Of a stretch of 64,000 bases of DNA, positions 3,201 to 60,411 are shown piece by piece; the stretch's first letter is position 1; every line of letters starts with the position of its first letter. The stretch covers positions 1 through 64,000 of the forward strand of contig JALMLS010000336.1 of NCBI GenBank assembly GCA_038496445.1, read 5' to 3'. This DNA comes from Trichosphaerium sp. ATCC 40318 (taxonomy: Eukaryota > Protista > Tubulinea). Made by a program: the position numbers and the translations under genes. Under the pieces are notes generated by a model, which made no database searches, was not told where the DNA came from, and saw nothing but the letters and a program-made list of their open reading frames with translations.

Positions 3201-3662
3201 TTCAAACAACAACACATACGCAGCCTTTGCAACTGTAGGCGTGAGTCACAGCAGTTGTACATTCTCCAGGGGTTGTAGAGCAAATTTGGTACAAAGGTTT
3301 AGCTGGACCACAGTAATCTGCACCAGACTCTATTTTTGCAGCGTATACGCGCCCAGATGGCGCAGGAGTGCATTTGCCGCAGTTGCTAAAGATTTTGTGC
3401 GCTTGTACTTCTTCGTTGGTGCACGGAGCGATTGGGAATTCATTTACGCTGTTCTTGGTGCTGTCCATGTACAAGGCTTTTGGATACCGTCAACTGTTTG
3501 AAATCCTCTATTGCAACAATTACGCGTAAAACTTCCGCTACCGTCGTTACAAACGGAAAACTGGACTTGAAACGCAGTATTGCATCTGTACAGAAGATTA
3601 TGCTGAGATTTCACTGTACTGGTTACTAGTAGAAGCAGTACGCTAACACAGAACCAGTGCAT
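210..3662 (-). pseudogene. Sialate O-acetylesterase (SASA) family surface protein: signal peptide, Cys-rich N-terminus, PT-rich linker, FN3-like region, GPI-like tail; frameshifted
   Basis: Spliced motifs GSHMVLHRAP, DVTFGDVFVCSGQSNM, FSGVCWYFGR..PVGLITSAFGGSSIE, GALWYQGE and IHPRYK..VGER. Signal peptide MHWFCVSVLLLL; hydrophobic end IVAALILL*. Frame breaks near 3110, 2780 and 2238. Confidence 0.8.
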
Positions 3663-3979
3663 AGCTCTTGGTTGTTTTTTATAATTAGTAAGAGCAGCAG
3701 ATTTGGAAAATGTTGCATTAAACGAAATCTTTGGCAAGTGGCTAGAAGTTGGTCGTCCGCTACAAAAATCTGTAGACAGAAAGGCAAGGTGGGAATTAAG
3801 TAGACGGCTCGACCCAGTACGACTTATTCGCTAAATCTAGATTGATCGCGTCTTAATTCCAGCAAAACCCATACGTTGCCGTATCTTAGCTCTTCGCAAG
3901 CAAAGTAATCGCTTGTATAAGTTCTTGGTCACAATTTCACGCCTAACGCTTCGACAGTACATCTCAAGGTATCACAACA

Positions 3980-4519
3980 AGACTTTTGCTTTGTGGGGAG
4001 GCGTTCCAGTAAAGGAGACGATGCGATATGTACCATTTATTTGCGCAGGTATCACGTTTTTTTAAGCCGTTACAAACGAGTTTTTAATTAGAAATAGTGA
4101 ATGGGTAAGGGACCTTACTCTTTTTGGAATCCAAAACCTATTTTTCAAGGTTCAAATGGAGTAGAAGTTGTACCCATTGAAGATCCTTATATGTGGAAGG
4201 ATAACCGTGGATACCATATGCTTGTACACGCTGAACGCAATACTCCATACGTAGGAGGGTAAGCTATTTGAATATAGATGAGTACAACAGTAATGTTATC
4301 AAACAAGGTATGGCTATTCTGAAGATGCTTATAATTGGGTATACTCTCCAGCAGCATACGCTAGAAGTCACATTTGAAGGAGGACTATTGAAGAAATACA
4401 AAAGACGTGAGCGACCACAAATATATGTCGAGCAAGGGGAACCACCTTACATTTTTAATGGTGTAGAATTACCTGATGCTGGTGCTGCATCTTATACTGC
4501 TGTACAGCAATTCAAATAA
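3980..4519 (+). pseudogene. Degraded GH43-like beta-propeller glycosidase remnant
   Basis: Motif remnants WGGVPV/KGDD/MYHLFAQ, W-KGPY, EDPYMWKDNRGYHMLVH, YSEDAYNW and RRERPQI..IFNGV. They lie in different frames (breaks near 4010-4025, 4105, 4360) and the central part is missing. Confidence 0.7.
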
Positions 4520-5049
4520 ACTCATTCTCATGCCACATCTACAATAGATTGCATTATTTACAGGCAGGCATAGAAGAGGAAAGCTCGTTGCTGGTAATTT
4601 CTGTTTGTTCGTTGAACTAGCATATCAAACTATCACTTGTTGCCCAGTGCTGTTCAATGGTAATGACCATACTTACACGTGCTTTTGAAAAATGTAAATT
4701 GCAGCAGTTTTATCCAACAAGCAAATGCTACGTATTTGTACTTTATTTTTTCTTTTCAGTATATTTTCATTTTTGCGAATGCTATTGTAGAGCAGGTGTA
4801 TTGTCGTGCATTGCTCTCTTTAGCTATGTACGGTGGAGCAGGCTCTATATATCTTGTCTGATACAAATCATGGCTTATGTGATCTTTGCGAATATCTACA
4901 AAAAGAAACAAAGTTGAGACATCAAGTAGTGATGAACAGATATTTCAACCTTTACTTTACATAAACATGTAACAGAATTTTCAGTAGCCAATTACAACCA
5001 ATAATACATGTTCAATTAAATTTTGATTACTTCCAGATGAGTCCATCTC

Positions 5050-6483
5050 TTATTTCCCTATTCTTTGCTTAAGCATTCGGTTTAAAGATCCATCTTCATT
5101 CCATTCCTTGTACAGACCTTTCTCTAAACCATTGATAAACTCACATTCAACATGTTGCTGTCCATTTCTATGCCATTGTTTAAAAACACCATCCTTTTTA
5201 CCATCATTAAATGTACAATGAATATGGAGTTGTCCATTATCATAATACTGTTTGAAATCCCCGTTCCTTTCATCATCAGTGTAAATACACTCCAACTCAA
5301 TCACACCATTCTCATGCCATTGCTTACTCTCACCTAATTTTTTACCATTTACATACATACACTGCATAGTAAGTTGTCCATTCTCATACCACTGCTTAAA
5401 CATACCATTTTCCTTACCATCAACATACGTACTTTGTATTTGTAGTTGTCCATCCTCGTACCACTCTTTATACTCGCCATTCTCTTTACCATCAACAAAC
5501 ATACTCTGTATAATAATATTACCATTTTCATACCATTCTCTATGCATACCATTTTCTTTACCACCAGAAAAAGTACACTGGATATTAAGTTGTCCATTGT
5601 CATACCATTCTTTGTACTCACCATCTATTTCACCACCAACATAAGTACACTCTATTCCTAGTGTACCATTATCATGCCATTGCTTGAAATGTCCATTTTC
5701 TTTGTTGTTAACATAAACAATTTGGATACTAAGTTGTCCATTCTTATGCCATTCTTCGAATAATCCTTCTTTTTTATCATCAACAAACATCCACTTGCAT
5801 TTAAGTTGTCCACTCTTAAACCACTTGAAATACTCTCCTTGTTTTTTACCATTAACAAACATACATTGACCAAGCAACTGTCCACATTCATAATACTGCT
5901 TGAACTCACCATGCTTCTTACCATCAACAAAAGTAAACTCAGTCCTCAGTTGACCACCCAAATACCAACTTCTATAATCACTATTTTCTTTACCATTTAC
6001 ATAAGTAAAGTTTCTCTTTAGTTGCCCATTCTTGAACCACTGTTTAAACTCACCATCTTTTTTATCATTAACATACATATACTCTGTCTCAAGCTGTCCG
6101 TCCTCACACCATTGTTTGAATTCACCATTTTTTCTCCCATTGGCATACATACACTGTATATTAATCTGTCCATTCTTATACCACGTCTTGTAATACCCAT
6201 TCAACTTTCCATTGATAACATTGAATTGTTGCTCTATTTTTCCGTCTGGGAACCATTTTAACCAAATACCATTGGGTACAAGCTCATTATTGTAGTGAGT
6301 ATTGATTGCAGCTCTTTTTGATAGCACGTGATACTTATTAAACACTTCTGCATTGAAAGTACATAAATATACTTGAATATCACTTGGTAGGTCTAATATA
6401 CTGCTACAAGTAGTATCTTGTACAAGACATAGACCTCTCTTTGGCAGCACGTCAATTTCTGAGTTATCTAAGGTAACCATCAA
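5050..6483 (-). CDS. F-box-like + MORN-variant (MORN_2/YwqK-type) repeat protein
   Basis: 477-aa uninterrupted ORF with ~16 24-aa repeats (G.FKQWYENGQL...C.YVNGKK). N-terminal ILDLPSDIQVYLCTF is F-box-like. A short upstream exon cannot be excluded. Confidence 0.85.
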   Translation of the reverse strand: MMVTLDNSEIDVLPKRGLCLVQDTTCSSILDLPSDIQVYLCTFNAEVFNKYHVLSKRAAINTHYNNELVPNGIWLKWFPDGKIEQQFNVINGKLNGYYKTWYKNGQINIQCMYANGRKNGEFKQWCEDGQLETEYMYVNDKKDGEFKQWFKNGQLKRNFTYVNGKENSDYRSWYLGGQLRTEFTFVDGKKHGEFKQYYECGQLLGQCMFVNGKKQGEYFKWFKSGQLKCKWMFVDDKKEGLFEEWHKNGQLSIQIVYVNNKENGHFKQWHDNGTLGIECTYVGGEIDGEYKEWYDNGQLNIQCTFSGGKENGMHREWYENGNIIIQSMFVDGKENGEYKEWYEDGQLQIQSTYVDGKENGMFKQWYENGQLTMQCMYVNGKKLGESKQWHENGVIELECIYTDDERNGDFKQYYDNGQLHIHCTFNDGKKDGVFKQWHRNGQQHVECEFINGLEKGLYKEWNEDGSLNRMLKQRIGK

Positions 6484-6708
6484 TAAATTAGATTACAACA
6501 TGAAAACAAACTAATCAACAAACGTTTCTAGCGCTATATTGGAGTTTTAGAGCATTAAAAAATACTCTCATTGCATGTAACAAGCTAGGTATACTACTTA
6601 TGCTCATCTCCGATGAGAACGGAAATGTATAGCTGTGAAAAATATGATGCAAGGGTTTTTTCAAAAAGTGATTGGTTTCACACTTGTACAACATTGATGT
6701 GGTTTTTG

Positions 6709-6867
6709 TGTTAGGCCGTAAAAGGAGATGATTTTTATAAGGCGAGGATGTCTTATCTAGGGTTGCTGGGAGATATGTAACGAAGATTTTGTACCGCTAA
6801 CATAAAGGAAAAAAAAAATCACGTGGACTAATTACAACTCTTTATCATCTCTTTTTACGGTCTAACA
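6709..6867. mobile_element. MITE-like element with 24-bp terminal inverted repeats (TGT...ACA)
   Basis: TGTTAGGCCGTAAAAGGAGATGAT (6709-6732) matches the reverse complement of 6844-6867 (TGTTAGACCGTAAAAAGAGATGAT) with 2 mismatches. Confidence 0.65.
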
Positions 6868-7312
6868 GTTGCGCTCATAAATAGACGGTTCATATTCATT
6901 TTGTTGTGGGTTTTCGTTAAAACTTCAGTAAAAAAGTAATAGTGTGGTATTTGCGCGTATTAAATAGCGGTAACGATGTTTTTGCTTTAAACGAGTTAAA
7001 AACAATTGGGTTCTGTTTTTCATGAGAAGCTCTTTTCTGCGATGTATTTAGTCTTTTGCGTACGTGAACTCATCTTTGTCGACTGAATTGCGTCTGATGG
7101 ACTAATAAAGCCTATGTTGGTTAGTTTTATAGTATTTTAAACAAATAATAAACTAGAGCATACCGAAGCTATACTGCCTTGTTTGTGCGAACTTCAATCT
7201 ATTAACTAGAGGTACACTACCTCCTCAATTTAGTTCAGGAGCCAAATGATTGTGGGAACAAATAAAAGTCAACTCAGGTAACGAATTGGTGTCAAAAAAT
7301 AAAGTTAAAACG

Positions 7313-9374
7313 ATGATTCACACTTTCAGTTTAAAACGTGTTTCCTATGACGGCACTCTTGAACTTAGGTAAGAAGCAGATGAACCCATTTTAACCGTTT
7401 TTTTTTTAATGGTTACGTTGTTTTTGATGCCATCCCTTGTTCCGCGCGTTTATTGTCTTTAGCGAAGGAAAACACGTGATTGGGAGAAATAAACTTGGAG
7501 TCACATCCAAAACAGTATCGAGGAAAGTATTCGCGCTTATAGTTACTCCCTCAGACGTGACAATCTATGTTGAGGTACGTTCACAACAATAACGTACTTT
7601 TCTCCCTTGTTCTTTCTTTTTCCTTTACCTTGGATAAAGTAGAGCACAAGTGGTGATTGCGAATTAGTCTATGTTTATTTTTTTTTTGTTGTTGTTGAGT
7701 GTTTTTTATCTACTGTGTAGCCTGAATCCAAAAACGATATGTTTATTCGTGGAGTAAAACTAGAGAAAGGAACCCAAGTGCGTGACTCCATCTATTAAAA
7801 ACAAACATAATTAAAGTAACTTTTGTTCGATAGCTCGTTGCTCCTTTAGATGAGTATATTCAAGTTGATTCCAAAGGATGTGGTACAACTTATGTAATCT
7901 CTATAGTATCTTCTGAGGCAGTTAAACCGCCTGAGCCGCCACCACCTGTGCCTCAACTGAAGTACTTGCGCCAACAAAAAAGTTTATAGTAAACTCTCTA
8001 ACGAAGCGTTCTTAGACTTGTTGTGGCATCTGATTATACTGACATACCTGAACTACCAGCTCCTCAAAAGTACATTGATCTCATTTATACTTTACACTCT
8101 AACAACAACGCAGAATTGTCGTACAAAAAGAAAGAGCAGTAGAGTCAGAGGAAGACATTTTTGTTGATTCTCAAAAAGAAACTGACGCAGAAAACCAACC
8201 TGGCTCGTACGTCTACACGTCATACAAAAACCTCCTTACTCCGGGTTTTCCAGGCAAGCTGAAACTCAAATTCATTCCCAAAACTTTCTTGATATAGACG
8301 AATTGCTTGGTATAACCAATGAACACCAACAAGTTGAAATAAAACAAGAACTTGAGGCAGTCACTAAAAAAGTGGAAACACCTTCTAAAAAAAGAAAAAA
8401 ACGCTATGCACGTGCTTCTTATACAATGATATTTTTTTGAATGACGTGATTGTTTCCTTAGATTGAATACGAAGACCTTGAAAGCGACAATGACCTATCA
8501 TACATGAACTATACTCCGAACCGTACAAAGCCGCAAGGGCATCCAAATGATGAACCAATAGATGTTGATGATATCGAGCCCCAAAGGAAAAGAGATCCAC
8601 CGAAAAAAACGGGTTCTATTCGGAAAACAAAGGCTACTGGGAAGAAAGTTAAACCGTCCTTCATTCCATATCAGTGCGCTAAGAAATCAGGTTACAGTCC
8701 AAAAAAAGGATCGTTCAAGCGGGCACTAGCTAGAGGAGGAATGATTGTCGTGGATTCTAACGAAAGTCTTTCATTGTCAGAAAGCTCTGATGATTATAGC
8801 GCTGATTCATTCGTACCCCTACAACAAGAAAACACACCAATTTCTCTATCCATATCTGGTGCGGTTAAAAAAGATGTGGAAAAAAAGTCATTTTGACAGT
8901 ACTAACCTACAACAACTTTCTAGAAAGTGAAGAGGAAGAAGACAAAGAATTTGATTTGGAAGATAATGAGAGTTCTCAAAACAGCATTGACAAATTAAAT
9001 AAGGCCAAAGAACTTGAAAATGAGGAATCTCTTAGAGACATATTAAGGGTAAGATACCAACAAAACAAACAAAAGAAAGAAAAAACCAAGAAAAAAACTT
9101 TTCCACGCACCACTGCAATTATCTATCGAAGCTATTCAAACTTATCTCTTCATATCTTATATTATTTTAGCATTACCATTACTTCATGAGCGAATCAGAT
9201 TCTTCCTCAAATGAATCTGATGGAGATTTCGTTTTAGATTTCGAAGAAGAAGATATTATTTTTCCTCCACGCAAAAAGTTTAGATACTGGAAGAACGAAG
9301 CACTGAAAAAAGGATTCAGCCCACAAAAGAGATTAGCGTATGTTATTGCCGAGAAAAGAAGGAAAAGCCTGTAA
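7313..9374 (+). CDS. Protein with N-terminal FHA-like (PNKP/aprataxin-type) domain and disordered basic/acidic tail; paralog A
   Basis: Spliced MIHTFSLKRVSYDGTLELSEGKHVIGRNKLGVTSKTVSRK carries the FHA IGR...SR motif. Multi-exon, with SPKK motifs in the tail. Confidence 0.65.
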
Positions 9375-23284: not shown

Positions 23285-26200
23285 ATGAGCCACAAGCGCG
23301 TCTTGAGTAAAGTAGTAGTGATTGGAGATAGCGGGTAAGTAACTTGCACAAGATTAGCTCTTTCGCCATTAAAACGTATCAGAGTGGGTAAAACAAACGT
23401 TTTGACGCGATATGTCAATGACAAGTTCGCTATCCATACAAAGGTGACAGTTGGTGCTGATTTTATGTCCAAGGAGGTTCAACTTTGCGACGGGACGTTC
23501 TCCACCCTCCAAATCTGGTGCGCGACAATAGAAGCCGCTTCGTTTTTGTTTTATAGTAGACTAACCGAAAAACCTGTAGGGACACTGCAGGGCAAGAGCG
23601 ATTCCAAGGAAAGCAAGATCCTAACAAATCTCCGACTGACCTTTCTTTTTAGGCCTCGGTACTGTATTTTACCGTGGTACGGATGTATTCATCGTCGTTT
23701 ACGATATTTCGAAACGATCCACTTGGGAACACATCTCGGACCAGTACGATCTTTTGATACTGCCTTGATTTTTTTGTCATTAATTAATGCTGGTGATTTT
23801 AAGCATTAATGAAGCTTATGCATCTTGCTCACGTGATACGCCTGTTCTTATTGTTGGAAATAAAACAGATCTCGAAGTAAAGAGGCAAGTGTCACCACAA
23901 GAAGTTGCTGCTTGGTACGTCTAGTTGTTTTCTGTTCTGTTAAAGCCATCAATTTGTATATGACGTAGTTATCTTAGTTTTTTCTTCACAGGTGTAAGAC
24001 TAATCGTCCGAACGCTTACTTCACTGAAGTATCAGCTAAGACAGGGTTCAATGTATCAAAGATGTTTGAGGTTGCAGCTGAGATGGCGGTTGGCCGAGAG
24101 GTTGTATGTGACTATAACTACAAGCCTAAAGAAGTACCACAAGATGAGGATACTGAATCGCCACCAGTATTCGATATCAACGAATCAGTACGCGCTGTCT
24201 CTTGTCTATTGTTCTGTAGTTTTGCTAAAAGTCTTTTTAAAGTCGTTTCGCTTGTGGGGTCCTAAAGGACATTCTATCCCACTTGCTAGAGTGGACGTTA
24301 CTTCTCACGTGATTGATTTCTTGGCGAAAGTAACAATCAAGCAGACTTATGTCAATATAGGTATGTGCATAAAGACGCAATGCAAATCGCTTACAACTTG
24401 TAGAAAACAATCCTATTGAAGCAGTTTTTTCATTCCCTTTGGATGAACGCGCTGCTATATGTGGCTTTGAAGCACGAATTGATGGAAAAGTATATAAGAG
24501 TGTCATTCAGGTACCATCTTAGTACAGTTATTAAATCACGTGCTAATGCAGTACTAGGAAAAAGAAGAAGCTAGAGAAACTTACGATGACGCTATTGCAG
24601 AAGGAAATGCAGCCTACTTGGTTGAACAACACAAGGTACTTGATATTTCTAGGTACTGTATGTTGGCTAAAAGCTTCGTTTTAGCCAGATATATTCACTG
24701 CTTACGTGGGCAATCTGCCGCCAAAGAAATACGTTGAGTTGTCTTTTACTTATGTCACTGAAGTATCCGACTACCAATTCGTCCTTCCTTCATACATTGC
24801 TCCTAGATACTCTCATAAAAAGATTGACGAAGGTAAAACATACACAATTCTATAAATAAGCCATCTCACTTTGATCAGATGAAATAGAAGGCGGAGTTTC
24901 ATCTCAAGGTTTTGGGTTCAGCCTAGATTTAACTTTTGATGTACCCAAAACGTTCAAGAATGTTGTCAGTACGACCCACAATATCAAGTCACACTATGAT
25001 ACACATGAGACTGGTGTTAGAGGTACCAAGTAAACTTCAGTTCGATCTTTGAACTAAATTGTGTTTAAAGGAACTGTATCATTCTCAAGGGAAGAGGCGT
25101 ATTTAACAAGCGATATTGTAGTACAGTTTGATGTTCCTCCTTCAAAAGATAAAACTTTATGGGTTACACGTGATCTTAAAAACCAACATGAAGCTATGTT
25201 ACTCTCCTGGGATGTCAGTAATGACTTAAATAATGCGAATGTATCAGAGGAGATCATTTTCATTGTAGACAGGTTCAAACACATTTTTGTTACCCACATG
25301 TTTCCTGACTAGTCGATCAAGGTCTGGAAGTATGAGCGGCGAGCCCATGAGAAGAGTTAAGTCGGCGCTGCAAGTATTCCTTCGTAGTTTACCTGTAGGC
25401 TGTACATTTAATATTGTTGGTTTTGGATCCTCATATGAGACACTCTTCCGTTCTAGTGTTCCATACTCAGATTATAACCTTGCTAAAGCATCAACCAACG
25501 TTTCGTCAATGCAGTACGCTGTGGTTTTTGTTACCCTACCTTTCATTTTGGAACTAATGTTCTGTCTAGAGCTAACCTCGGTGGAACGGAAATACTCACC
25601 CCTATTAATGCCGTTCTAAGTAGAAAACCAAGCAAAGGAACTAGACGCGTTGTTTTCGTTCTTACTGATGGACAAGTAAGCAACACTGATCAAGGTATTT
25701 ACCTCGTTCACCGAAACAAGTGTTTTTACTAACTCTTCTTTTGCGTGCAGTTATCAAAACTGTTCAACGTTTTTGCGAAGATGATGATACAGTTGTTTAC
25801 GGATTAGGCCTTGGAAACGCAGTATCACATCATCTCGTAAATGGCTTGGGTAGAGCTGGAAAGGTAAGTCAGAAATTGTTTGGTAGCCACTAACTTTGTT
25901 GTTAAAAAAGGGAGATTCTGATTTCATAGCAGGCGGCGAAAATCCTGGACCTAAGGTTTTGAGAATGCTCAAAAGATCTCTAAGAGAAACATGGCAGAGC
26001 GTATCCCACCTCTTTTCTTTTTTTTTTTTTTGAAATACAGATTTGTTTTGATGTTAGTCTCCTTGACTTTGACAGCTTTCAGTCACTCGTAATGGAATAG
26101 AAATAACGAGTACACCGTCTAGGCCTGATTGGGCATTACTAGGAGGTAGACTGAGATTGTTTGTTCTGAACACGGACCCAACTTCACTTAAGGACGATAC

Positions 26201-27229
26201 TTTGAGAGTTGAAGTAAAAACTACCTCTGATACTTTCTCATGGGACATTGACTGTAGTAAAGCTACTACAGTTAAAAACTCCGGTGTCATATTCCCAATG
26301 CTTGCAAGACAGATGATACGGTAAGCAACATAGAGATGTCAGTTGCCCAAGTTTTGCTCATTCCATTGTTTAAGTGAGGGCGAAGAGTTAAGTAATATCT
26401 CAAACGCTGAAATTGTTCGTGTTTCCAAAGCTTACGACATCATGTCAAGCCATACTTCTTTTGTGATTGTAGAAGAAAGAAAAGACAGAAACGAAGGACC
26501 AATGGAACTAAGAAAAATCGAAGCAGTGAAGCAAGTACAACATCAAAGTTCGCCTTTCACGAGTCTATCGGATGTATCAAACACAGCAGGATATTCGTTT
26601 AAATTAGGAAGCAGATCATCTAATCAAGATATGTCTTATGCTTGCGTTTCTCTATCAGCCAACAATTACCAGGCTGAGGCAGTATGTCTATCAAGTTTAT
26701 TGCAAGACGTCTAACTCATTTTCATAGAAAGGATGCTGTGGTGGCGGAGGATATTCTAGGCCATCGTATAATCGCCCTTACAGACCTCCAATAACAAATT
26801 CATACAACAGCCCTCCTTCTATAACATCGAATACATCTACTACACCCGTTAAAGAGAACTCCTCGTCACAAGCTAAACATAAAACTCCCAGAGAACAATT
26901 TGATGCTTTGGTTTTATTACAAAGTTCAAAAGGTTCTTGGTCACTAACTAAAGAGTTATTCGATATCCTAGGGAAGCCTTTCAATGATAAAACCACAAAC
27001 AAACCAACGAGTGCTCAAGGTACCTCATCAAAACAAGCCTTGATTTTTGCTTTGTAATTGATGTATTTTAGATGACGTCTGGGCAACAGCACTTGCTGTT
27101 TACTTTATTGAAACAAACATGAAACAATTCAAAGATGAATGGAGCATGCTAATAAAAAAATCAAAGGAGTGGCTTTCCAAGCAACCTTGTTCACGCGAAT
27201 GTACAACCGCTGCTAAACAGTTTCTTTAA
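23285..27229 (+). CDS. Rab7-like small GTPase fused to VIT + vWA (VWA5A-like) domains
   Basis: GTPase motifs [51 protein letters not shown] and EVSAK. These splice in frame into VIT (NPIEAVFSFPLDERAAICGFEA, EKEEARETYDDAI, GNLPP), vWA (IVDRSGSM, LGGTEI, LTDGQV) and C-terminal LQSSKGSW/WATALA. Confidence 0.88.
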
Positions 27230-27829: not shown

Positions 27830-28771
27830 TTGATAAGAGAAGAAAATAATCTATCCGCATATATTCGCCAGCACTGTTATTTTGAAGAAAAATGCCACCT
27901 AAGCGGAAACAGACATCAGAACTCCCTATGTGCTAGCAAACAAAAACAGCATAAGACTAGCTCAACGGAAATTGTACAAACCTCGCCTTTTGAGGTGTAC
28001 GATACTGCAGCAATGATAACGAAATTAGCGTTTTCTATTATTCCACTATATGATGTATGCTCGTGGATACGATTGAATAAGGTATTCCACGAATTGCTAA
28101 GCGAAGAATCCACAATGTTTTATTACTACTCAAAGTTTCTTCCAAATTCCGAGAATAGTGAAGACCTCCCAACACCTTCACTAGCTCAAACATTCGTACA
28201 CAACCGTCTTAGATTTGAACACAAGTATATATTCTCTTTTTCATTCTCTTACAACGTACAAAGTGGATATGTAGGTCCACCAGATATCCCTTTTGAACAG
28301 ATTATGACAAACCGAAAACATGGAACCGCTGACATCTTTTTCGATAGTATCGAAGAAACAGTACGCTACGACCATGGAGAAAGAAAAGATCTCAAGATAA
28401 AAGGAACGGTGTTCCCACAAAATGTATCTGTTGGCATAGATTCAGCTACTTTCGATATATCTTTTTGTACACGTGTCATTGGTGGAGATGATTATAGATT
28501 CAACATAAATATTTTTCTAAATGGTAACAGCATACTTGAAGCTGACTTGGATTGCGGTATGGCACTCAATATTAATATTGAACGTGCTCGCTTATTACAG
28601 GAGCTATTGAGTATTGATGGTGAACAATATTGTGAAATACCTTATGGACCTGAGGTGCAGCTGTTGGTTATGTTTGTACATTGGATGAATAAGCATTGTC
28701 AGAAAGTACCTGTTGATGTGTTTCTAGCCAATGAAACACATGAAAGAATTAGGAACATCAAATACCTTTAA
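27830..28771 (+). CDS. Intronless hypothetical protein with F-box-like N-terminal segment; possible 5' frameshift
   Basis: 313-codon open frame; FSIIPLYDVCSWIRLNKVFHELL is F-box-like. The natural-looking start MPPKRK at 27892 is out of frame. Confidence 0.65.
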   Translation: MIREENNLSAYIRQHCYFEEKCHLSGNRHQNSLCASKQKQHKTSSTEIVQTSPFEVYDTAAMITKLAFSIIPLYDVCSWIRLNKVFHELLSEESTMFYYYSKFLPNSENSEDLPTPSLAQTFVHNRLRFEHKYIFSFSFSYNVQSGYVGPPDIPFEQIMTNRKHGTADIFFDSIEETVRYDHGERKDLKIKGTVFPQNVSVGIDSATFDISFCTRVIGGDDYRFNINIFLNGNSILEADLDCGMALNINIERARLLQELLSIDGEQYCEIPYGPEVQLLVMFVHWMNKHCQKVPVDVFLANETHERIRNIKYL

Positions 28772-59599: not shown

Positions 59600-60411
59600 A
59601 TGACAACACCTGCTATATCTACTGTACAACAACATTTGCAAAGATATTTAGACCTAATCTTCTTCTAATCTAGGGCAATGTTCCTCAATTCAAAATTGTT
59701 CTTTGTGGTGATGGAGGAACAGGAAAAACAAGCCTTATGAGAAGACATATTAGTGGTGACTTTGAAACAAGATATTATCCTACTGTAGGCGTTGAAGTAT
59801 ATCCTTTAGCCTTGAATACTACAAGAGGGCTAGCAATATTTAATGTATGGGACGCAGCTGGGCAAGGAAGACAAAGAGATGCATTCTAGTATGTCCACCA
59901 TTTGTTGCAATGTTATGATGTTGTCATGCTAAATTCTCTTTTAAGCTTAAATGCAAGTGCAGCTCTTATTATGTTTGAAGTGACTTCTAGAATTACTTAT
60001 AAAAATATATGCTTCTGGTACAAGGATGTACTGCGTGTTTGTGGTGAGATACCCATTGTCTTGATGGGCAACAAAGTCGACATCAAAGAAAGAAAAGTAT
60101 GAGTTTTTTTTTCTTGGTTCACTAACATGTGATGTAGGTCAAGCCACGTCACATTGTTTTTCATAAAAAAAAAGTATTCAGTATTACCCTATATCAGCAA
60201 AGGCAAACTATAACATAGATAAACCGTTCAAATACTTGCTTGAAAAACTATCTGGGTACAAACTCACACATACTACAGTTGTTGCTCAATTGTACTTAGC
60301 GACTGTAACATTGAAATAGTAGGTGGTATAGCTTTAAAGACACCTGAGAAGAATATCACAGAAGAACAAAAAAATAACTTGGAACAAGAGTGTAAAACAC
60401 TCAGTTTATGA
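59600..60411 (+). pseudogene. RAN: Divergent Ran GTPase paralog with an apparent frameshift in an A9 run
   Basis: [59 protein letters not shown] and [12 protein letters not shown]. The frame breaks at 60165-60173. Confidence 0.8.

Follow-up and report, generated by a model that had tools for sequence, protein, structure and literature searches.

A predicted gene joining a Rab7-like GTPase to a VWA5A-type VIT-vWA module in the amoebozoan Trichosphaerium sp. ATCC 40318

The genome of the marine amoebozoan Trichosphaerium sp. ATCC 40318, whose introns reportedly average 75 nucleotides (nt) (PMC10521059), holds exons for a Rab-like GTPase that are followed closely, on the same strand, by exons for a VIT-vWA protein. 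Are these two neighbouring genes, or one gene whose product joins a small GTPase to a much larger module? The locus occupies positions 23285-27229 (+) of the window, by which we mean the whole analysed stretch of 64,000 nt at the start of contig JALMLS010000336.1; the sequence is that of a eukaryote (GC ~38%, very short introns) and belongs to an assembly of 70.3 Mb in 642 contigs. We consider it probable, if far from certain, that the locus is a single gene encoding one cytosolic protein of ~976 amino acids (aa), in which an anchor-less, Rab7-derived GTPase is joined to a VWA5A/Vwa1-type module and would act as a GTP-dependent endolysosomal adaptor.

Domain content and exon structure

The spliced model was read directly from the sequence, and Pfam, tblastn and structure matches were run exon by exon. 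It comprises 20 exons totalling 2931 nt, that is, 976 codons and a stop codon at 27227-27229. Eighteen of the 19 introns are of the GT-AG type and 43-75 nt long; the sole exception, at 23609-23652, is GA-AG. All Pfam pieces are collinear: Ras in exons 2, 4, 5 and 6, VIT in exons 7-10 (2-25, 29-62, 63-87 and 89-111) and VWA_3 in exons 13-14 (10-68, E = 2e-9, and 74-111). The parts of the gene are listed below; C26 denotes a paralogous gene described in the next section.

23285-23334 (+): exon 1, containing the start codon and the P-loop's first half (G1, GDSG...)
23383-23517 (+): exon 2, in which G1 ends (VGKT), with switch I (TVGADF) and beta2-3 as far as QIW; Pfam Ras 11-52, E = 1.9e-6
23580-23608 (+): exon 3, G3 and switch II, read from the sequence
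23609-23652 (+): intron 3, GA-AG, 44 nt, phase 1, flanks AAG/GAAAGC
23653-23743 (+): exon 4, RabF4/F5 region (FYRGTD, VVYDIS); Pfam Ras 66-91
23804-23914 (+): exon 5, G4 (NKTD at 23859-23870); Pfam Ras 96-127
23992-24187 (+): exon 6, G5 (SAK at 24032-24040), helix 5 and an acidic/Pro-rich linker of ~29 aa without a stop; Pfam Ras 134-158
24188-24242 (+): junction intron, 55 nt, GT-AG, phase 0, leading from the Rab linker to the first VIT residue
24243-24360, 24404-24510, 24558-24635, 24685-24832 (+): exons 7-10, VIT domain
24879-25022, 25071-25272 (+): exons 11-12, spacer between VIT and vWA, ending ...IFIVD; exon 12 matches the C26 paralog by tblastn
25322-25513, 25570-25694, 25751-25863 (+): exons 13-15, vWA domain
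25911-26000, 26076-26320, 26375-26681 (+): exons 16-18, post-vWA region typical of VWA5A-like proteins, collinear by tblastn with C26 and homologues
26728-27019, 27072-27229 including the stop (+): exons 19-20, low-complexity linker from KGCCGGGG (26728-26751), then the putative C-terminal helical domain

Exons 1-6 encode a Rab-like GTPase part of 204 aa in which the G1-G5 boxes are intact (GDSGVGKT, the switch-I threonine in TVGADF, DTAGQ, NKTD and SAK), as the initial annotation had proposed; by these motifs, the module is predicted to be competent for GTP binding and hydrolysis. The RabF-type motifs VGADF, TLQIW, RFQGLG, FYRGT and VVYDIS are also present, judged by eye against the published consensus. 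The Ras fold with its G boxes and the RabF motifs are those of the Rab family; the C-terminal cysteine motif of that family (CC, CXC or CCXX) is absent. The claim that there is no prenylation signal likewise stands for both possible ends of the Rab frame: the spliced protein ends in ...AKQFL, without CaaX, CC or CXC, and if the junction intron were retained, the frame would stop at 24264, 77 nt on, with the tail ...VSLVGS, in which there is no prenylation motif.

The remaining exons encode, again as first proposed, a complete VWA5A-like protein, with a VIT domain and then a vWA domain that carries the DxSxS, T and D of the MIDAS (the metal ion-dependent adhesion site) of the VWA5A/Vwa1 type. 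This site is intact: D-R-S-G-S is assembled across intron 12 (D at 25268-25270, SGS at 25323-25331), the threonine lies in GGTE (25586-25588) and the second aspartate in LTDG (25667-25669). There are two in-frame acceptors here, 9 nt apart, at 25313 and 25322; use of the upstream one would insert 3 aa and disrupt the spacing of DxSxS. The putative C-terminal helical domain carries ...SSKGSW... and ...DVWATALAVYF..., and exon 20 can be aligned with the C-terminal ends of VWA5A-like homologues (28-46% identity). A signal peptide seems implausible, because the predicted N-terminus is a Rab beta-1 strand.

The Rab-VIT junction and the GA-AG intron

The two halves meet at an intron that starts with GTACGC at 24188, ends with AAAG at 24242 and is in phase 0 on both sides, so that the reading frame runs from the Rab linker into VIT, as the initial annotation had it. 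Exon 7 has no in-frame ATG and opens right at the start of the VIT module, in what we take to be the stretch where human VWA5A begins.

This layout recurs in two paralogous genes. One of them, C26 (L017, minus strand), is collinear by tblastn over Rab exons 4-5 and VIT-vWA exons 7-20, with 45% identity in exon 17 and 39% in exon 18, and its N-terminus is equal in length to the product of exon 1. The other, C71 (L018), is more distant and has the common plan of Rab, linker, phase-0 GT-AG intron and VIT; its first VIT exon has no usable ATG, as in the fusion gene. The introns equivalent to the junction are 45 nt long in C26 and 49 nt in C71, and the first VIT exon starts at the same alignment position. 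The linkers of the three genes (~23, 29 and 41 aa) differ in sequence and the paralogs are only 35-65% identical to the fusion gene, yet the frame is kept in all three. The sole other relative of exon 7 in the genome is the C26 copy (65% identity), which indicates that these two genes are duplicates of an already fused ancestor. The MIDAS of C71 is degenerate (~3540-3773 and 3226-3354, minus strand), with DASQH for DxSxS and VSPG for LTDG, and metal-dependent binding has probably been lost in this copy.

The same order of domains was found in a transcriptome. Two sequences of Stenamoeba stenopodia, EP01102_P010911 and EP01102_P010912 (P0110 and P0270; EukProt EP01102, 'ORF type: complete'), contain Ras (15-173), VIT (210-314) and VWA_3 (458-604) in one open reading frame (ORF) according to Pfam. 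The Stenamoeba protein P0110 was found through an exhaustive library search with exon 13 (match at 467-527), as the one match in which vWA lies equally far from the N-terminus, and the isoform P0270, of 1044 aa, adds the C-terminal domain. Another amoebozoan class thus has the Rab-VIT-vWA architecture in a single mRNA. The Stenamoeba protein shares with the fusion gene the Ras-VIT-vWA(-C-terminal domain) order and a CCGGG motif before the C-terminal domain; it differs in sequence, identity being ~34% in Rab and 50% in the vWA exon, and orthology is unproven. The CCGG(G) motif stands at the start of the linker (26734-26751 in the fusion gene, ~2003 minus in C71, 840-844 in Stenamoeba P0270) and is missing from C26; none of 150 non-fused VIT-vWA homologues has CCGG. 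Possibly the motif is S-acylated and in this way stands in for the prenyl anchor that the Rab has lost.

The reading frame of the Rab half depends on intron 3. The stretch 23580-23652 contains neither a GT donor nor an in-phase GC donor, and the Rab sequence across exons 3-4 is restored only by the GA-AG splice, so that the intron at 23609-23652 is obligatory for the model. At the same codon position C26 has a GT-AG intron. The GA donor matches the consensus at -3 to +5 (AAG/GAAAG) except at +2, and GA donors in this context are reportedly used efficiently in human FGFR genes (Brackenridge et al. 2003). We regard use of the GA-AG intron as likely, if unproven.

The published gene models for scaffold 90 are a Rab-like model, TRSP11853.t1 ('Putative Ras-like protein Rab7', 85 aa), followed by TRSP11854.t1 ('VWA domain-containing protein', 882 aa) (Table S2 in PMC10521059). 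Exons 1-3 with read-through to the TAG at 23650-23652 amount to 255 nt, exactly 85 codons, which shows that the predictor broke the gene at the GA donor and not at the Rab/VIT junction. With its 882 aa, the second model exceeds the product of exons 7-20 (772 aa) by ~110 aa and must therefore draw on the region of Rab exons 4-6. We considered this length as proof of the exon 6-7 splice and rejected it, since many stop-free paths of ~110 codons exist with and without that splice; the simplest path through true introns gives 880 aa, which is compatible with the splice and not decisive.

Two further features of the window may be mentioned. Downstream of the gene lies an open frame of 313 aa (27830-28768, +) with no Pfam match. 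A second Ras-family gene is found at 59692-60099 (+; Pfam Ras 1-122, 87.8 bits) with one TAG inside the match, probably within an intron; it may be one of the small GTPases given for scaffold 90 in the same published table.

Affinities of the two halves and modular relatives

The description of the GTPase as Rab7-like holds in part. Compared with solved structures, exon 2 matches Ypt7/Rab7 best (E ~1e-8 to 4e-7, other subfamilies 3e-5 or worse, so that the E-values differ by a factor of roughly 60 to 2000), Ypt7 is also first, weakly, for exon 4 in PDB, and the best PDB matches of both exons are all Rabs. Exon 5 is nearest to Entamoeba EhRabX3 and Ral, exon 6 has no significant match among solved structures, and the two exons are diagnostic of no Rab subfamily. 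Orthology to Rab7 was rejected on these grounds and because the genome has a canonical Rab7 (C3:537809-538364) with the classic Rab7 switch-I sequence, to which exon 2 of the fusion gene is 49% identical. The fusion protein has all five G boxes and the GADF and FYRG switch motifs in common with Rab7/Ypt7, but its C-terminal half is not Rab7-specific, and the missing C-terminal cysteines mean that it would have no geranylgeranyl anchor and no cycle with GDP dissociation inhibitor (GDI). On sequence grounds the Rab half is a diverged, Rab7-derived paralog and not Rab7 itself. Rab domain sequence from the paralogs leans to Rab21/Rab5 and that from Stenamoeba to Rab11/Rab5/Rab1. In all four fused proteins (this gene, C26, C71 and Stenamoeba) G1, G3 and G4 are intact, which argues for selection on nucleotide binding; G5 reads SAK in this gene and C71, SSK in C26 and SAL in Stenamoeba.

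Rab domains within larger proteins are known. The large Rabs CRACR2A/Rab46, Rab44 and Rab45/RASEF have EF-hands and a coiled coil in front of a prenylated C-terminal Rab, and RJL/DNAJC27 has an N-terminal GTPase with a J domain behind it and no lipid anchor. With the former the fusion protein shares a Rab-type GTPase domain within a much larger protein; its Rab is, however, N-terminal and without a prenylation motif, and no exon has a Pfam match to an EF-hand or coiled coil. It is similar to RJL in that an effector-type domain follows an N-terminal, anchor-less GTPase. To our knowledge, neither RJL nor any of the large Rabs carries VIT-vWA. The initial label of an unusual large-Rab architecture is apt as to 'unusual', and we found no paper describing a Rab with VIT-vWA in the literature searched, but the plan of the large Rabs is not the one seen here, and the architecture is not unique: it is present in at least two amoebozoan lineages, with a permuted variant in a third.

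The search of the library with exon 13 gave 1823 matches at E<=1e-3. The best came from amoebozoan transcriptomes (Stenamoeba, Cavostelium, Luapelamoeba), from Balamuthia ('VWA5B1'), from a choanoflagellate, and from a chytrid and fish ('VWA5A'). The nearest named relatives are of the VWA5A/VWA5B type (Gonapodya, Balamuthia), cytoplasmic proteins; none of the named homologues is PARP4-like, and no exon has a PARP catalytic or BRCT match in Pfam. The link to vaults/PARP4 and to conflict systems suggested at first is not supported, and neither is the defence role drawn from it. PARP4 and the ITIH heavy chains do share the VIT-vWA pair with the fusion protein, but PARP4 adds BRCT, PARP catalytic and MVP-binding parts, the ITIH chains are secreted, and neither has a GTPase. 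By its sequence the VIT-vWA half belongs to the intracellular group of VWA5A/BCSC-1 and Dictyostelium Vwa1, and not specifically to PARP4. It resembles these proteins in the succession of VIT, spacer and vWA with MIDAS, and probably in a disordered linker, a helical C-terminal domain and the lack of a signal peptide; the difference is that known members start directly with VIT, whereas here a Rab of 204 aa stands in front. Dictyostelium Vwa1, the only amoebozoan relative that has been characterised, is cytoplasmic, has kept its MIDAS, has a helical C-terminal domain predicted to dock on vWA, and interacts in development with FbxwD, an F-box protein and subunit of an SCF ubiquitin ligase (PMC10539598).

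Other VIT-vWA relatives carry additional domains. A UBA domain precedes VIT-vWA in P0036, P0041 and P0113 (Luapelamoeba and others) and at the Trichosphaerium locus C60, where UBA_4 (E 6e-10) lies ~0.8 kb upstream of the VIT-vWA exons on the same strand (270500-280499; 3590-7660, +). Four relatives have EF-hand pairs behind vWA, a Balamuthia relative has a UBR box (zf-UBR), and the Stenamoeba VIT-vWA protein P0002 (EP01102_P008144) has a Synaptobrevin (R-SNARE) motif at 632-678. A UBX domain suspected by eye before a further Trichosphaerium paralog, C14, was not confirmed by Pfam. In Pelomyxa schiedti KAH3745480.1 and at the Trichosphaerium loci C1, C190/C401 and C447, a permuted Rab follows vWA: the Pelomyxa Rab has neither first strand nor P-loop at its front, its order being G3 at 717, G4 at 775 and G1 at 838, and at C1 (1194000-1203999, ~5300-8800, +) the P-loop GDANVGKS is encoded after G5. 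These proteins also combine a VWA5A-like scaffold with a Rab-type GTPase in Amoebozoa, and their vWA exon is 58% identical to that of the fusion gene; they differ in that their Rab is behind vWA with the P-loop moved after G5, while the Rab of the fusion gene is N-terminal and in the normal order. Such varied additions (UBA, UBR box, EF-hands, SNARE, permuted Rab) point to a scaffold linked to trafficking or ubiquitin.

Rab-bearing forms are rare among the relatives. A DTAGQE-type motif occurs in three of 153 inspected sequences (the best 150 matches and P0270-P0272). In the ESM Atlas, a query with P0110 returned only plain VIT/vWA clusters and no large cluster combining Ras with VIT-vWA, and a metagenome scan with the alignment of exon 7 and its paralogs gave no match. 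Within the searches made, Rab-bearing VIT-vWA forms appear to be a small set restricted to Amoebozoa.

Proposed role and alternative readings

The linker after the Rab fold resembles the hypervariable tail of Rabs, and if the locus encodes one protein, VIT-vWA stands where the lipid anchor would be. A Rab module without prenyl groups would neither insert into membranes nor undergo GDI cycling. With its intact switches it may still sense a GTP state like that of Rab7, or imitate one, in dealing with effectors, guanine nucleotide exchange factors and GTPase-activating proteins, and it could serve as a nucleotide-dependent docking site or switch on endosomes, lysosomes or phagosomes. The MIDAS, by which vWA domains usually hold an acidic residue in a partner, would do so here with a client protein, and the C-terminal domain may autoinhibit vWA, as proposed for Vwa1 and VWA5A. 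In this way a VWA5A-like scaffold and its clients would be brought to the endolysosomal system in a GTP-dependent manner, ubiquitin-ligase adaptors being candidate clients, as for Dictyostelium Vwa1. The list of proteins co-immunoprecipitated with human VWA5A, a single data set, includes RAB5A/B/C, RAB7A, RAB10, RAB11B and RAB35 along with other endocytic proteins (PMC12540739); the presence of RAB5A/B/C and RAB7A fits an endolysosomal role.

Several points weigh against this picture. The published annotation splits the locus into two genes. A GA-AG intron, a rare type, is needed for the Rab half, and if this intron is left unspliced, translation stops after 85 aa. ATG codons at 24051 and 24144 lie in an open VIT frame and make a product consisting of VIT-vWA only conceivable. 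No one subfamily clearly accommodates the Rab domains of all four fused proteins, so that a single common origin is unproven, and the functional role of the fused members is deduced from sequence. Finally, no RNA or protein record from Trichosphaerium was found in the exhaustive exon 13 search (best 150 of 1823 matches, none of them >=85% identical to any fetched locus) or in word-indexed searches; of the latter, the one with P0110 was dominated by Rabs and the one with a profile of P0270 plus exon 13 by Rab11-type proteins, and the query restricted to the VIT-vWA region had three matches.

Could the locus be two separate genes, a small anchor-less Rab-like protein and then, only a few bases on, an independent VIT-vWA gene, with the in-frame 'intron' a coincidence or an intergenic spacer? 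The two published models could be read in this way, the third codon of the first VIT exon in C26 is an ATG, and without splicing the 64 codons upstream of exon 7 (24051-24242) contain no stop in the VIT frame, a stretch that overlaps exon 6 in another frame and provides the alternative starts just mentioned. The paralogs have not kept that open frame, which in both C26 and C71 is closed by a TAG at the acceptor, and it is probably due to chance. Moreover, the published split falls at the GA-AG intron, and the 882-aa model itself uses the region of Rab exons 4-6. Three diverged paralogous genes and the Stenamoeba ORF have all kept the junction in frame, neither the Rab with a retained intron nor the Rab of any paralog has a prenylation end, and a spacer of 6-55 nt is far too short for a eukaryotic intergenic region. 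We therefore hold two genes to be very improbable. A recently disabled copy of a fused gene, in which a T-to-A change at donor position +2 of intron 3 leaves an 85-aa stub or a VIT-vWA protein made from an internal start, is also unlikely, if somewhat less so. It would account for the GA-AG intron being the only one of 19 with a non-GT donor, with GT at this place in C26, and for the transcriptome-guided gene predictor having ended the Rab model at the GA donor; predictors do not allow GA donors, however, so the annotation is not evidence against splicing. The donor keeps the consensus at every position from -3 to +5 apart from +2, and there is no damage to the other 18 introns or to any of the 976 codons, no catalytic or MIDAS residue being missing, which would be unexpected after long neutral decay.

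The fusion might also be an integrated decoy or trap, in which the Rab is bait for Rab-targeting effectors of pathogens or giant viruses and VIT-vWA with the C-terminal domain is sensor or executor, similar to the decoys of plant nucleotide-binding leucine-rich repeat receptors; further VIT-vWA proteins of the genome would then bear pieces of other host proteins as bait. Amoebae do host intracellular bacteria that target Rabs. The varied additions on close relatives and the heavy traffic of giant-virus genes in this genome (PMC10521059) also speak for this reading. On the other hand, UBA, UBR box and EF-hands are not baits but common domains of adaptors or sensors, and a scan of viral contigs with exon 13 found no relatives. 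We do not favour a decoy and rate its chance as slight, because the Rab module imitates the cell's Rab7 poorly (49% identity over the most conserved exon) and because Pfam finds no executioner domain (nuclease, pore-former, NAD-ase) in exons 7-20.

Assuming a single gene for an endolysosomal adaptor, the locus bears on three subjects. For Rab biology, it would be an uncommon case of a Rab domain in which a large protein module has taken over from the lipid anchor and all nucleotide-binding motifs are kept. For the annotation of this organism, the split at the GA-AG intron suggests that similar Trichosphaerium genes may be mis-modelled elsewhere in the genome. For the VWA5A family, one may go further and suppose that amoebozoan VWA5A-like scaffolds are a modular family, each member steered by a different plugged-in host module (anchor-less Rab, permuted Rab, SNARE piece or UBA/UBR), its Rab members being GTP-gated intracellular 'integrin-like' adaptors of the phagolysosome or integrated-decoy sensors for trapping Rab-directed effectors of pathogens; we put this forward tentatively, as a rather unlikely generalization. 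VWA5A/BCSC-1 is a conserved cytoplasmic protein with a reputation as a tumour suppressor and no known mechanism. Fusions act as 'Rosetta stones' that hint at which proteins work together, and the amoebal joins to Rab, SNARE, UBA and UBR, taken together with the human Rab5/Rab7 pull-down, predict that the family works at endosomes or lysosomes. If true, the modular-family supposition would give the first mechanistic handle on human VWA5A/BCSC-1.

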